The notes under the pieces: model-generated
What the model saw: the letters and a program-made list of their open reading frames with translations, nothing else
The model's database searches: none
Told to the model about the DNA's origin: nothing
Translations under genes and position numbers: made by a program
Part shown: positions 42,901 to 48,900 of the stretch, one piece after another
Numbering within the stretch: position 1 is the stretch's first letter
Layout: the number at the start of each line of letters is the position of its first letter
Source of the DNA: Macrostomum lignano
Lineage: Eukaryota
Length of the DNA stretch: 64,000 bases
Assembly (NCBI GenBank): GCA_002269645.1
Contig: NIVC01001149.1
Span: forward strand, 248,001-312,000
Direction: 5' to 3'

Positions 42901-45900
42901 GCCTGTCTAAAATATTCACCGTCACCTCTTGAGCAAATTCTTGCTAATTTCATCGTCCTCTTTGCTTTGCAACTTTTGCTGTTTTTCTTGCTGCTTTCTC
43001 TGCCGCTTTTGCTGCCGCAGTTGTTTCTGTCGGTTGGTCTTCAGCAGCCTCCTGGTGCCGCCGCCGCTGCCGCGCCTGTCGGACCTCCGACTGCCGTGGC
43101 GTCTCGATGCTGGGCCGGATTTTTTCTGCTTTGACTGTGGCTGGCTGCCGCCACTGCTTGCGGCAGCAGGAAAAAAGGGATTTTAACCAGCGTTTCGCAT
43201 GCATATTTGGCAGCTGCTACAGATTGACAGTGTTTTCTTGAGCGCAGCAGTGCTTGAGACCCAGCTCTACGCTAGCAAGATTCTGCTGGACTCAAAAAGC
43301 AATTAGAGAAGCGCGCAATTTCATATTGGTACTCGGAAATTAAACTGGACGCTGCGGGAGTGCTGCGCTGCTGGTGTTACAGATGTTGGATAATCGCTAG
43401 CTGTTAGACAGGGATGACACCTGTTAGACAGGGGTGTCACCTGTTAGACAGGGGTGTCACCTGTTAGACAGGGGTGTCACCTGTTAGACAGGGATGTCAC
43501 CTGTTAGACAGGGATGTCACCTGTTAGACAGAGGTGTCACCTGTTAGACAGGGATGTCACCTGTTAGACAGGGATGTCACCTGTTAGACAAGGGTGTCAC
43601 CCGTTAGACAGGGATGTCACCTGTTAGACAGGGATGTCACCTGTTAGACAAGGGTGTCACCTGTTAGACAGGGATGTCACCTGTTAGACAGGGATGTCAC
43701 CTGTTAGACAGGGATGTCACCTGTTAGACAGGGATGTCACCTGTTAGACAGAGGTGTCACCTGTTAGACAGGGATGTCACCTGTTAGACAGGGATGTCAC
43801 CTGTTAGACAGGGGTGTCACCTGTTAGACAGGGATGTCGCCTGTTAGACAAGGGTGTCACCCGTTAGACAGGGATGTCACCTGTTAGACAGGGGTGTCAC
43901 CTGTTAGACAGGGATGTCACCTGTTAGACAGGGATGTCACCTATTAGACAGGGATGTCACCTATTAGACAGGGATGTCACCTGTTAGACAGGGATGTCAC
44001 CAACAGGGGCGCTGGCACCAGTTTCGCTAGCAGCAAAATTAAAGAGCAGATTAGCTATAAGCAATTAATGCTAAATGCGCCGCGCCGTGGTGGGTGAGCA
44101 GTGGGTGGTGCATTCGGCACAAAGCTAAATAATTATTTATTAGACAAAGTTAAGTGCGCAGCGCAAAGCTTTAACACTTTGAGATGCTAAATTATGCCTA
44201 ATGTGTTTCCTTTCTTTAGTACGAGTAAGCTGTTAGTTTAGTTGATAGTACTTCAGGAATTGTCACTTTGGTATTAGTCCAGGTCAGATTATAGGGCTCA
44301 GAATAAAATCAACTTTAATTTGCAATCGAAATAAATATGATTAATTAGCTAAATTATTAGTAATTTATAAGGCTGCGTTGTAAATTCTAATTAATTGATT
44401 AACATAGACAACAACTGCTTCAAATTGACTTTCTCTATAAAAAGAGATGGTTTATATGGATTTTTAAACATCGTCACCCAGTTGGTTAAATTGAGTTTAG
44501 CTTTGAAAAATTAAGATTTTTGTTTAAATTTCTCGATAGAAGCGAAAAGCGCACAGTAAGTAGTATAAGCTGCGTATGTCGATGTAAGTTTCCCGATTAC
44601 GCAAAGTATATCCTGCACTCTCATTGAGCATATCACAGACTTGAGGGAGTCCGAATTAAGCAACTGGAAGGCTGTGAGAACCTCAGAAGGTGCGCGCTTA
44701 CCTGGACTGGGTCCTGAAGTTGAGAAAAAAAATTGGGGATCAGATATGACGGGGTCAACGCGTGCGGAATTTTTGCTGACATTGGACTAAAGCAGAATAT
44801 GTTTTAAGCGATGCTTCAAACACTCTACTGCTAGTGGCAGTTACGGGATTTTCACGCTATAAAAAAGTTTTAAAGTAAATACGCAGCTTGCAAAGATAGG
44901 ATTTGTGTCCCGGACTCCTGGACACGACCTTTTCTGTCAGTTTTGTTATTTTTCACCACCAATTAGCTAATGGAAGACCTTCTTTACTGCTTAGATATCA
45001 GTAGATATCAAGCATCACGGAGAGGGAATGGCTGAGATGTCAAGGCTCACGGGGGAATGGCTGAGATGTCAAGGCTCACAGGGGAATGGCTGAGATGTCA
45101 AGGCTCACGTGGGGGGAATTGCTGAGATGTCAAGGTTGACAGGGGAATTGCTGAGATGTCAAGGCTCACGGGGGAATTGCTGAGATGTCAAGGCTCACTG
45201 GGGAATGGCTGAGATGTCAAGGCTCACGGGGCAATTGCTGAGATGTCAAGGTTGACAGGGGAATTGCTGAGATGTCAAGGCTCACGGGGGTAATGGCTGA
45301 GATGTCAAGGCTCACGGGGAGGGAATTACTGAGATGTCAAGGCTCACGGGTAGGGAATGGCTGAGATGTCAAGGCTCACGGGGGGATTGCTGAGATGTCA
45401 AGGCTCACGGGGGAGGGAATTACTGAGATGTCAAGGCTGACAGGGGAATTGCTGAGATGTCAAGGCTCACGGGGAGGGAATTACTGAGATGTCAAGGCTC
45501 ACGGGTAGGAAATGGCTGAGATGTCAAGGCTCACGGGGGAATGGCTGAGATGTCAAGGCTCACGGGTAGGGAATGGCTGAGATGTCAAGGCTCACGGGGG
45601 AATTGCTGAGATGTCAAGGCTCACGTGGGGGGATTGCTGAGATGCCGGCCAAGGCTCACGGCGAGGGAATTACTGAGATGTCAAGGCTCACGGGGAGGGA
45701 ATGGCTGAGAAGTCAAGGCTCACGGGTAGGGAATGGCTGAGATGTCAAGGCTCACGGGTAGGGAATGGCTGAGATGTCAAGGTTCACGGAGAATCGCTAA
45801 GACTTAATAAAAGCATATTTCCTGTAAATCTTTCACTGTTTGGTAATTGCAGTGTAGAGTAAATATCTAGTAGTCCATGCCTTCAAGGCGCCCTTGACTG

Positions 45901-48900
45901 CCATCTGCCAGCAGTCCTAGATTAGTTTCCAAGCATGTCCAACTCTCTCGTGCAAGTTAAACGTAAAACAATAAACAATTAATAAAAAGAACAAGCAAGC
46001 AAAACTACGCAAGACTTTGTACCGAATGAAATCCGTGCGCACAAGTGGCTACTAATGGCTTCTATGTAAGTAGGCAGCTAAAGTAGAATATGCCTCGCAT
46101 AGTTGGGGCTACGCGATTAATTAATAATTTTGTATCTAATAAGTTATGAAGATTTTTGTTGCAAAAGCTGCAAAAAGCAGTCCGAATAAGCAATAAAATT
46201 CATTGCTACAAATGCCAGTCATGCGACTATGTATGCTGTTGTAAAAAATTAATAAACTAAAGAAAAATGCAACTGACCGAGTGCCTCCCGTTGCCATGCA
46301 GGCAGGCAGTCCACGCGTTCGCATCTCAAACTCGCGCACAGCCCCCAGCCAGAGCAAGCTTGCATCAAAGACGGCTCGCTTGATTGAGCCGACAAGCCAT
46401 GATCCCCTTGTTAATTAGGTCCCTATCTACCTATCCTTCCCTTCACCGAGCTGGCACTGATCCCCCTGCTCGTGGCTGATTAATCGGCCCACGACTTGTA
46501 GCGCCCAGTGCAAAAAGAAGATTTGGAGTTTTCGGCAATCAATGCCTGCCCTGCGCTAAGCCCCGGGCTCAGGTGGGCTGCCCGCAGCCTCATCGGATCG
46601 AAGCGACTTTGCTTTGACTCAGGTGGGAGGAGCCTCTGACAGCAGAGCTCTCGATCCCCTGATCCCTGCTAATCCCAACGAGGCGCTTCGCCCATATCTT
46701 GTCGGATTTGGAGTATTTTTATTGCCGCCAGATCTTGTCAGATTTCCCCTCTTGGCTAAAGAATCCAGAATGAATGAAAGAAATTTACAACCAGTTTTTT
46801 AACTCTACCTGCGATTCTCCTCTCTACTCTGTTCACCTGTTCCGTTTGCTCTATAACATCCGGTATCCCAGTCCATTCTATGAAACGCCCGTTAACTATT
46901 TCATAATTATTCAAGTTCCTTGCCACTTCTTGTTGCTTTAAACAGCCTTGAATTCATGAGTTCTGTTGAGTTCTTGAGTATCGCTTGATATATTTACAAA
47001 AGAGTCTGGACAAGCCGATGAAGCCGCAGGGAGAGTTCAGACTGACTATGCTTATAAAAAAAGGACTCAAATAACCAGAGACTCTTGTCTTTGGTCATGC
47101 TACCCCCCCCCCCTATCTACAGCCAATTTCCGGTCCTTGACATTCGAAAACGGAGGCTGACCGGTCCTCAAGACAAGCCCTGCAGCCTCTCACCGGCCAT
47201 CAACATCAGTCTCTCATCAAGCCTCTGTCCAATCTTCATCAGCCTCGTGCCCCGGTAATTATTAGACCAAAGATTCAGACTTTTAATTAGACTAGCAGCA
47301 AGAAACGGATAATTTTTGCTGTCAGAATTGAGCTCTTACTGAACTCTTTGAAGTCACCTGTGCCCATAAATAGAATAGCTGTGTCTCCAGCTTCTGGATT
47401 TTGACGTTAGAACCTGCGCCCTAGTGATTGCAGCACCCTCCTGATTGCAGCACCCTCCTGATTGCAGCACCCTCCTGATTGCAGCACCCTCTTGATTGCA
47501 GCACCCTCCTGATTGCAGCACCCTCCTGATTGCAGCACCCTCCTGATTGCAGCACCCTCCTGATTGCAGCACCCTCCTGATTGCAGCACCCTCCTGAGTA
47601 CAACAGCACCTCCTGATTGCAGCACCCTCTTGATTGCAGCATCCTCCTGATTGCAGCACCCTCCTGATTGCAGCAACCTCCTGATTGCAGCACCCTCCTG
47701 ATTGCAGCACCCTCCTGATTGCAGCACCCTCCTGATTGCAGCACCCTCCTGATTGCAGCACCCTCCTGACTGCAAAGCTTCACAACCGAAAGCATTTTTA
47801 ACCCTCCAAAATTTAAAGTACAACACGTTCTCAGATTCACAGCAACTTAATTCTGGAAACAATCAGCTGCACCAATGCGAAGACTCACTTAGGCGAAGCC
47901 GTCTGCTTGATCTTGGACCTTGACGACGGGTAGGCCTGTCGAATAGCTTCATTGTTGCTGTAAATGTCCGTAAATATTCTTAAAAACTCCAACGACAGAC
48001 TCTGCAAATCGGACAGCAGAATCTTGATGGCGCTGTCCTCCTGCATGAGCGACCTGTGCTGGTCACCGGCGGCGCCACCTCCGTTCTCCAAGCTGTTGCA
48101 CTTGGCAACCTTGAACTTGTCGAAGGAAATCTCGAAGGCCGTCAGATCCTGATAGAATCTGGTGAGGTCGAACAGGTCGAACTCAGCCCTGATGTTCTCC
48201 GGACTATACTTGAAGAACAAGTTCACAACGCGAAACAGAAAGTCGTCGTTGGGATAATTGAAGCTGGTCTCGAAGAACAGCGAGCCGCTGAACTCGCGCA
48301 CCTCCTGCGCTTTCTGGCGCATGTTACTGAGGGCCTGGCTGATTTCGATGACGATGTTGGCGCATTGGGAGCCGTAGTGCTGGTTCTGCACGTAGCGCAA
48401 GTGCCAGGTGACCGCCATGCGCCGCAGGCCATGCACCGTCTCTGCGAACTTCGAGCTGAAGCGAGACAGAATGGCCGACAGCCGGCTGAGAGTGGCGAAA
48501 GCTGTTCGGTTGGTCTCGCGCAGGAAGGCCCACTGCTGCACCAGGTTCGCGTCCTCCACCATGTCAGTGTTTCGAGCCAGCGCGTCTCGCTCCTTGATGG
48601 TCTGCAGGCGGGACAGCAGCGATGAGCGAGGCGTTTGCACCACCGACTGGATGCGGTAGTCGGACTCAACGCACGGCTTGCCGCAGCTGCACTTGCTGAG
48701 CCAGTTGATGCCTGGGGCGGCAGAGATTAGCGGTTTCGCAGCTAATTTACAGCGAAACGGAGAGAAAAACCCGGAGAGAAAATGGCAAATGATTCAAATT
48801 CGAATAGGTCTTACCGGGATTCTCGCTGATGTCAATGCCGCAACGTGCCAGATCGTTCAGAGTGCAGTAGGGAAGATCTGCGGATAGAGTATTTGTTAAA

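Follow-up and report, generated by a model that had tools for sequence, protein, structure and literature searches.

What does a long reading frame, fused to the thumb motif of a channel-like gene, contribute to the protein in which it lies? The question is raised by a 64,000-nucleotide stretch of the genome of the flatworm Macrostomum lignano (assembly GCA_002269645.1, contig NIVC01001149.1, positions 248,001 to 312,000; the whole stretch is hereafter called the window), in which a gene resembling those of the DEG/ENaC channels was noticed. The original prediction proposed that an insert of about 330 residues replaces the knuckle region of the ectodomain. The analysis described here makes it rather probable that the window holds most of the M. 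lignano gene for a divergent DEG/ENaC-type membrane protein, with an all-alpha module of about 250 residues placed after strand beta10.

The gene lies on the minus strand, and 12 of its exons were placed between positions 62888 and 39914 by six-frame inspection followed by tblastn with relatives (Table 1). All 11 introns are of the GT...AG type, and the joined exons (2514 nt) are in frame and free of stops up to a natural TGA. The first coding exon, which reads MTCRHQHGSAVRRRRRNSCRL in the copy of the gene at a sister locus (L001, contig NIVC01000431.1; L001 positions 10001-10064), lies about 3.6 kb upstream of the exon for the first transmembrane segment (TM1) and beyond position 64000, so the copy in the window is without its start codon.

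Family identity of the predicted protein

By its ectodomain, the predicted protein is a member of the DEG/ENaC superfamily. The Pfam ASC model (PF00858) matches the spliced window protein with 100.6 bits against a cut-off of 23.6, which bears out the claim of a DEG/ENaC-like gene, and its relatives described below score 79-102 bits. The match runs over profile positions 62-389 of 455 and over residues 76-350 of the window protein. Comparison of the family alignment with ASIC4 by hhalign gave a probability of 99.2, with the alignment extending from FPAVTLCN to beta10, and phmmer matched ENaC and ASIC chains in the PDB, 6BQN and 6WTH among them. ASIC4 serves as comparator merely as one of the best-scoring candidates of a word-limited search; PMC9949801 reports no ASICs in the platyhelminths that it sampled.

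Several landmarks of the family are present. The post-TM1 motif FPxVTxCN is present at 62665-62633 and aligns with ASIC4, and the cysteine-rich thumb ends with C-x-C-x2-P-C-x4-Y followed by beta10, a segment that aligns with ASIC4 and whose residues are invariant in the family alignment. As for the cytoplasmic N-terminal His-Gly gating motif, HQHGS is found in the sister copy some 18 residues ahead of TM1 and HVTNG at a comparable position in the trematode relatives, so the motif may or may not be conserved. Kyte-Doolittle hydropathy finds two hydrophobic segments of membrane length and no others (residues 1-25 and 696-720), which should place the whole intervening sequence, with the insert, outside the cell.

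Coding status of exon 7 and support from a sister locus

All of the peptides quoted in the original prediction were recovered on the minus strand where it had placed them, with CSCGKPC at 48691-48671, FVALTVKL at 42131-42108, and the others at 48670-48641, 48616-48584, 48157-48110 and 48007-47972. Exon 7 is 823 base pairs (bp) long (48711-47889); its acceptor is the AG at 48712/48711, and its donor, GTGAGT, begins at 47888. The thumb and beta10 motif (48691-48641) and the 250 codons that follow it share one stop-free stretch of 302 codons, 48793-47888. The GC content of the three codon positions of exon 7 is 0.50/0.39/0.81, and GC at third positions (GC3) holds between 0.77 and 0.90 over the interval 48703 to about 48030, for about 680 bp past the thumb motif. 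The other exons of the gene have GC3 values of 0.63-0.74, which exon 7 equals or exceeds. Such a strong GC3 signal in the frame of the channel motif marks the exon 7 open reading frame (ORF) as genuine coding sequence, and neither a chance ORF nor intron read-through.

The best phmmer match of exon 7 (99% identity) is a cluster of three M. lignano proteins, A0A1I8G4G9, A0A1I8J0A9 and PAA83169.1 (BOX15_Mlig002427g1). The last of these and A0A1I8J0A9 have the very exon chain that had been proposed for the window, in which ...KQTASP is followed by the basic, glutamine-rich sequence and the rest of the protein. The sister locus is 97% identical to the window and collinear with it, and has the same ZIP-transporter neighbor; the two are thus syntenic duplicates or haplotypes. 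The GenBank annotation of the Mlig_3_7 assembly drew on RNA-seq data and assembled transcriptomes (StringTie/TACO plus de novo assembly; PMC5730564), and as PAA83169.1 is part of that RNA-seq-based annotation, the exon chain has short-read transcript support, obtained at the 97%-identical sister locus and not from the window itself. The proposed chain is therefore the same as that of an RNA-seq-derived model. The older UniProt model A0A1I8G4G9 (43156-42044, minus strand) departs from exon 8 prematurely and takes exon 9 in a different frame, so that the SFVALTVKL hairpin is lost. This frame is likely a mis-prediction, the frame of PAA83169.1 being the one conserved in trematodes.

Comparison of the two loci also bears on selection. 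The coding sequences of the window and L001 differ at 14 of 2282 sites, with nine synonymous and five non-synonymous changes, of which exon 7 has five and two, respectively. Divergence in the best-aligned blocks of the introns is 0.4-7% (mostly 2-5%), accompanied by kilobase-scale changes in repeat length; intron 5, for instance, is 6447 bp in the window versus 4546 bp in L001. Although the counts are small, they favor purifying selection acting on the insert and the remainder of the gene alike. Pseudogene status was considered and rejected, as the frames are intact at both loci and synonymous changes predominate.

A predicted helical module shared with trematodes

The exon 7 translation was used as a single phmmer query in an exhaustive search of 1.84 billion representative proteins. 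Four hits were returned, the M. lignano cluster and three that, with the members of their clusters, are trematode DEG/ENaC-like proteins: Dicrocoelium dendriticum CAH8541868.1, Opisthorchis viverrini OON18927.1, Paragonimus westermani KAA3681085.1 and KAF8562613.1, and P. skrjabini miyazakii KAF7258988.1. In alignments of M. lignano and the four trematode species, the module is located right after C-x-C-x2-P-C-x4-Y and beta10, and the trematode modules are 25-31% identical to that of M. lignano. The orthologues with the same insert that the original prediction suggested looking for thus exist in Dicrocoelium, Opisthorchis and Paragonimus, and its claim of a distinct subfamily is strengthened by the presence of one module in four trematode species. 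Because the module is common to M. lignano and trematodes, it predates the split between Macrostomorpha and Neodermata.

The most conspicuous feature of the module is the invariant L-x-Q-x-W-A-F-L-R-E-x-N-R-T-A-F (WAFLRE(S/T)NRTAF, 48544-48497), which includes an N-x-T sequon at N381 (48511-48503). Two cysteines, C430 and C518 (codons 48364-48362 and 48100-48098), are also invariant, as are further positions that include E450, V451, R452, F454, P467, D470, F471, L478, F479, F480, D502 and T504 (numbered as the window protein in the family alignment). The invariant sequon and cysteine pair fit an extracellular, possibly disulfide-braced domain.

Gene structure adds to this picture. In P. westermani (locus L002), the module has an exon to itself, 777 bp long (residues 422-680) with AG and GT ends, followed by an exon of 32 codons (SLVTLTIQL...NPI) and then by the exon for the second transmembrane segment (TM2). 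The first serine codon of this hairpin exon is split AG|T in P. westermani and AG|C in M. lignano, and in both lineages the exon ends in phase 1, eight residues before an invariant TM2 serine. From the matching boundaries and phases it follows that the order module, hairpin, TM2 is ancestral to both lineages. The P. westermani intron after the hairpin exon appears to begin with GC (ATTG|GCAAGT) instead of GT, at about 56520-56530 of L002.

The size of the insert needs to be qualified. The interval V338-K664 measures 327 residues, close to the 330 that had been claimed, versus about 32 in ASIC4 (from the tyrosine of TRYGKE to NFLVLDVFF). The conserved module accounts for only about 250 of these, and the 77 residues encoded by exon 8 are specific to M. 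lignano. This linker (Q13 K12 R12 S10 G8) has a net charge of +18 and seven dibasic pairs; it has no trematode counterpart, and the trematode module continues directly into ...VDQ-SLVTLTIQLTRDRNRLVRLESVQTIFNP-TM2. The DNA of exon 8 is low-complexity and open in all three frames, with its frame set solely by the splice chain. The conserved unit is thus, on alignment, of about 250 residues, and the rest of the insert is lineage-specific low complexity. The polybasic linker is probably a disordered spacer, and protease cleavage at its dibasic sites is conceivable; a strict furin motif (R-x-K/R-R) is absent from it. A Ser/Ala-rich stretch of about 49 residues between TM1 and FPAVTLCN (62814-62668, minus strand), with no counterpart in the trematode relatives, looks like another disordered expansion specific to this lineage.

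Outside flatworm proteins phmmer found no relatives of the module, although a single query may miss members in Schistosoma, cestodes, planarians and other spiralians. No relatives were found among the JGI metagenome contigs scanned for the module. Nothing came back from word-indexed homology searches that used exon 7 or the concatenated ASC exons as the query, and one based on the family alignment was dominated by mammalian ASIC4, apart from which it retrieved the M. lignano protein only. Pfam, run on the insert alone, gave noise and no family.

Structure prediction was carried out with AlphaFold from the five available sequences, a shallow alignment, and secondary structure alone was used. 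By DSSP the module is almost wholly helical in models of both the full-length protein and the isolated module, with helices of approximately 61, 33, 22, 22 and 42 residues. In a crude heptad scan, M. lignano and Paragonimus share the placement of three long amphipathic helices that are compatible with heptads. Together with the presence of only two transmembrane segments, these models support, as a prediction, the earlier suggestion that the extra sequence is helical and extracellular.

Position of the module in the ectodomain

Less secure is where in the DEG/ENaC fold the module has been placed. In the likely arrangement, beta10 is followed by the module, then by the hairpin exon (beta11-beta12) and TM2, so that the module would occupy the position of the knuckle at the membrane-distal top of the ectodomain. 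Several lines of evidence favor this order. The beta11-like strand of the hairpin exon has the alternating hydrophobic periodicity of a beta strand, as does beta11 of ASIC4 (its beta12-like strand has no clear periodicity); the exon lies about 29 residues before TM2, as in ASICs; its boundaries are conserved between M. lignano and P. westermani; and the trematode TM2, GLVLAFLVVCLLDL, keeps the G-L...L-L-(D/E) spacing of ASIC4, GLFIGASILTLLEI. The earlier description of FVALTVKL as beta12-like, and of the knuckle as replaced, belongs to the likeliest topology but goes no further than inference, since neither Pfam nor hhalign sees the C-terminal hairpin.

A number of observations weigh on the other side. 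The ASC match had been expected to be split around the insert; instead it ends at beta10 (389 of 455) and never resumes. When the insert was deleted in silico from the M. lignano, Paragonimus and Dicrocoelium proteins, the match still ended at 389-404 with a score no higher, and a reversed-sequence control behaved in the same way. The hhalign alignment to ASIC4 likewise ends at beta10, and a profile of the hairpin and TM2 drew no DEG/ENaC chain from the PDB. Smith-Waterman comparisons with ASIC1, ASIC2 and ASIC4, assessed with shuffles, gave hairpin and TM2 z-scores mostly below 1.2, which are not significant, and MAFFT aligns the beta11-beta12 segment of ASIC4, VLDVFFEALTSEAMEQRAAYG, without gaps to the WAFLRE segment of M. 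lignano. The AlphaFold models are of low confidence (mean predicted local distance difference test score, pLDDT, 39.8 at full length; for the module alone, mean pLDDT 50.7, predicted template modelling score 0.46, helix cores 60-72) and yield no tertiary arrangement, and the full-length model draws SFVALTVKL as a helix. Foldseek against the PDB returned generic long-helix proteins only, at E values of at least 0.05; these matches were rejected as meaningless, and no fold was assigned. The argument from the ratio of non-synonymous to synonymous changes is based on 14 substitutions only. Finally, the family alignment shows neither the G/S-x-S filter nor the GxxGLxxG motif that precedes TM2, and the protein may not conduct ions.

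An attempt was also made to mend the C-terminal alignment by cutting the relatives into pieces, but the pieces scattered and the approach was dropped.

Alternative readings

The state of the pore bears on what kind of protein this is. In register with GLFIGAS of ASIC4, the family alignment has GLVLAFL in the trematodes and TLSISLF in M. lignano; an S-I-S triplet does occur in TM2 of M. lignano, but it is shifted by two residues and not conserved. The conserved TM2 glutamate is aspartate in trematodes and histidine in M. lignano. The protein may thus differ in its ion selectivity or even in whether it works as a channel. It is possible, though on balance unlikely, that the protein is a non-channel derived from the DEG/ENaC family, a receptor, adhesion or scaffolding protein in which the ectodomain fold is kept, the pore has decayed, and the helical module is the functional end. 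The filter position (AFL in trematodes, SLF in M. lignano), the histidine of M. lignano TM2, and the last 65 positions of the Pfam model, which are never matched, would be consistent with such a protein, and silent flatworm members of the family exist, since three other M. lignano DEG/ENaC genes gave no peptide-gated current (10.1101/2022.03.23.485451). Both transmembrane segments, the short distance from hairpin to TM2, and the G-L...L-L-D spacing of TM2 are nonetheless kept in the trematodes, and the out-of-register S-I-S is present in M. lignano TM2.

Less probable still is a second topology, in which the knuckle is kept, the WAFLRE segment is the true beta11-beta12, the module stands where TM2 should follow, and the distant C-terminal transmembrane segment is a new or displaced anchor. 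Besides the gap-free MAFFT alignment, this topology draws on the spacing between the beta10 tyrosine and NLVQQWAF in M. lignano (about 38 residues, near the roughly 32 of ASIC4), on the WAFLRE segment being the best-conserved stretch of the whole insert, and on the failure of every profile to recognize the actual C-terminal hairpin. However, the spacing match holds in M. lignano only, as the trematodes have some 45 extra variable, proline-containing residues in the would-be knuckle. The periodicity of the WAFLRE segment is helical, not beta, and it is modelled as the start of the 61-residue helix, the longest. Despite contiguity, Pfam and hhalign both stop short of it; its z-scores against ASIC1, ASIC2 and ASIC4 are mostly below zero, the highest being 1.02 (fraction at least 0.17), none of them significant; and a profile from beta10 through WAFLRE found no DEG/ENaC chain in the PDB. 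This topology would also put about 300 residues between beta12 and the membrane helix, while a hairpin-like exon with conserved phase sits at the place of beta11-beta12. What probability the two topologies leave over falls to arrangements that are neither of them.

That the 250-codon ORF is an artefact, be it intron read-through, a transposon fragment or a neighboring gene misfused to the channel gene, is scarcely credible and already contradicted: against the lack of a Pfam domain in the ORF, two word-indexed searches without relatives, repeat-rich adjoining introns and the different frame of exons 8-9 in A0A1I8G4G9 stand an exon and frame shared with the thumb and beta10 motif, a coding signature at least equal to that of the other exons, conservation between the two M. 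lignano loci 4-5 times better than that of introns with more synonymous than non-synonymous changes, the same fusion in five gene models predicted independently across four trematode species, and a sister-locus model derived from RNA-seq.

Features of the locus

The coordinates of the gene and of other features in the window are collected in Table 1. The introns of the gene consist mostly of mini- and microsatellite arrays, for example CCAA repeated 405 times and a 48-bp unit repeated 34 times, and are a source of long spurious ORFs in every frame. Introns 8 and 5 each contain, on the same strand, a copy of a tRNA-like box-B element (GGTCGGGGGTTCGATTCTCGACC), which is probably a tRNA-derived short interspersed element (SINE); ARAGORN and Rfam made no calls in the window. 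Elsewhere in the window, Pfam identified exons of a ZIP (SLC39) zinc transporter (PF02535), and an intact gag-pol ORF of 1281 residues with protease, reverse transcriptase, RNase H and integrase in Ty3/Gypsy order, ending in a PPGELGQD tandem repeat. The latter looks like a possibly active long terminal repeat (LTR) retrotransposon.

Table 1. Coordinates of gene segments, repeats and other elements in the window, with the evidence for each.
Feature	Position	Strand	Evidence
Exon 1 (first in window): TM1, Ser/Ala-rich low-complexity stretch, post-TM1 motif	62615..62888	-	ORF, tblastn, splice chain, hydropathy
Exon 2: finger region (...ADMLKG)	61717..61881	-	tblastn, AG/GT sites
Exon 3: ...GQCYTLHP, beta-ball/finger	60820..60968	-	tblastn, splice chain, hhalign
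Exon 4: palm/beta-ball	60444..60628	-	tblastn, splice chain, hhalign
Exon 5: start of Cys-rich thumb	55325..55424	-	tblastn, splice chain, hhalign
Exon 6: thumb	48815..48877	-	tblastn, splice chain
Exon 7, 5' part: thumb end and beta10 (C-x-C-x2-P-C-x4-Y)	48641..48711	-	peptide match, AG acceptor, alignment to ASIC4
Exon 7, remainder: predicted 250-residue helical module	47889..48640	-	GC3, phmmer, alignments, AlphaFold
Exon 8: 77-residue basic/Gln-rich linker	42926..43156	-	splice chain, alignments, composition
Exon 9: candidate beta11-beta12 hairpin (SFVALTVKL...AVRIVQ)	42044..42132	-	boundaries and intron phases as in Paragonimus westermani
Exon 10: TM2 (41451-41383) and start of cytoplasmic tail	41286..41453	-	splice chain, hydropathy
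Exon 11: cytoplasmic tail	40996..41026	-	tblastn, splice chain
Exon 12: tail with Ala run, then stop	39914..40145	-	tblastn, splice chain
Repeat arrays in introns of the gene	41616-41997, 43401-44001, 45003-45789, 47425-47774, 48916-50533, 51405-52226, 52665-54299, 55481-56074, 57318-58178, 58554-58995
tRNA-like box-B element, intron 8	42740-42762	-
tRNA-like box-B element, intron 5	54577-54599	-
gag-pol ORF	7131-10976	-	Pfam
ZIP (SLC39) zinc-transporter exons	24758-25231, 32683-33513	+	Pfam PF02535

Significance

The database names of these flatworm proteins are either "hypothetical" or an automatic "amiloride-sensitive sodium channel", and the latter may mislead because the pore signature is missing. 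Searches of the literature on flatworm DEG/ENaC proteins, on knuckle insertions and on the gene identifier turned up no description of the module architecture, and no expression, localization or functional data for the gene. The module marks an undescribed flatworm branch of the DEG/ENaC family, one that is also without the usual pore signature. It represents a lineage-restricted acquisition of a domain in a well-studied channel family, together with loss of that signature.

DEG/ENaC channels are gated via their ectodomain, and the palm strands beta10-beta12 link the ectodomain to the pore. A conserved helical domain of 250 residues at beta10-beta12 would therefore be a natural experiment, either a new sensor module mounted on the gating machinery or a recycled scaffold. 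The module is common to the free-living M. lignano, in which transgenesis and RNA interference are available, and to flukes of medical and veterinary relevance (Opisthorchis, Paragonimus, Dicrocoelium). With no relative detected outside flatworms, it may provide an experimentally tractable and potentially parasite-restricted feature of a surface protein. No degenerin or ENaC subunits were found in the transcriptome of the trematode Cryptocotyle (PMC10728431), and if the sensor-stalk reading set out below is true, the protein may be one of very few DEG/ENaC relatives that trematodes have retained.

Proposed mechanism and comparison with known systems

How could such a module act? In the mechanism preferred here, the modules of the three subunits, with three long heptad-compatible helices apiece, would converge near the trimer's three-fold axis and build a glycosylated crown or stalk of helices on top of the ectodomain. 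With beta10 and beta11 as its anchors, this crown could pass a pull or a binding event down the palm to TM2 and the gate, and would serve as the tether, or the ligand- or partner-binding lever, of a mechano- or chemosensory channel. This tether or sensor-lever crown, proposed by analogy, is offered tentatively, as a possibility well short of even chances. More doubtful is the fuller proposal that a glycosylated, disulfide-braced trimeric stalk is the primary sensor and that replacement of the sodium filter has led to a new selectivity or to a non-conducting signalling or adhesion protein.

Comparison with canonical DEG/ENaC members (ASIC1, ASIC5/BASIC, the alpha, beta and gamma subunits of ENaC, and FaNaC) shows what has been kept and what has changed. 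The flatworm proteins have the same two-transmembrane topology and large ectodomain, FPxVTxCN after TM1, beta-ball and palm strands (LDPQ.YDY..P, GP.FHT), and a cysteine-rich thumb ending in C-x-C-x2-P-C-x4-Y before beta10. Unlike the canonical proteins, which have about 32 residues between beta10 and beta11, the M. lignano protein has some 327 before the presumed beta11 (250 of them conserved), the C-terminal hairpin and TM2 are unseen by profile methods, and the G/S-x-S filter is not conserved. Divergent platyhelminth DEG/ENaC clusters have been noted before, and were then filtered out of a CLANS analysis (PMC10507113). The gene described here probably belongs among them, as those clusters are also flatworm-only, highly divergent and unconnected to the main clusters; the likeness is one of description only, and that paper reports neither architecture nor helical insert.

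The closest analogy for a sensor at this position is the knuckle of alpha-ENaC, whose N-glycan at N511 is needed for shear-force sensing according to Knoepp et al. 2020, as cited in PMC7958617. In that account the glycosylated knuckle element is a proposed link to the matrix, and the flatworm module likewise has an invariant N-R-T sequon. The alpha-ENaC knuckle, as described there, consists of two short helices with the glycan as the tether, whereas the flatworm proteins add a helical domain of 250 residues whose glycosylation is predicted.

Two further systems show that ectodomains of the family can be elaborated in particular lineages. The GRIP region in the finger of ENaC contains inhibitory tracts released by proteases, a lineage-specific elaboration that regulates gating. 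The M. lignano linker resembles it in being lineage-specific and in having seven dibasic sites at which cleavage is conceivable; unlike the GRIP tracts it lies after beta10 and not in the finger, is without the strict furin motif, and is absent in trematodes. The nematode degenerins MEC-4, MEC-10 and DEG-1 carry extra extracellular regulatory, cysteine-rich domains in the first half of the ectodomain, with intact pore motifs. They offer a precedent for additional ectodomain modules confined to one clade of mechanosensory DEG/ENaC channels, although those domains differ in location, are cysteine-rich rather than helical, and resemble the flatworm module in no detectable way.

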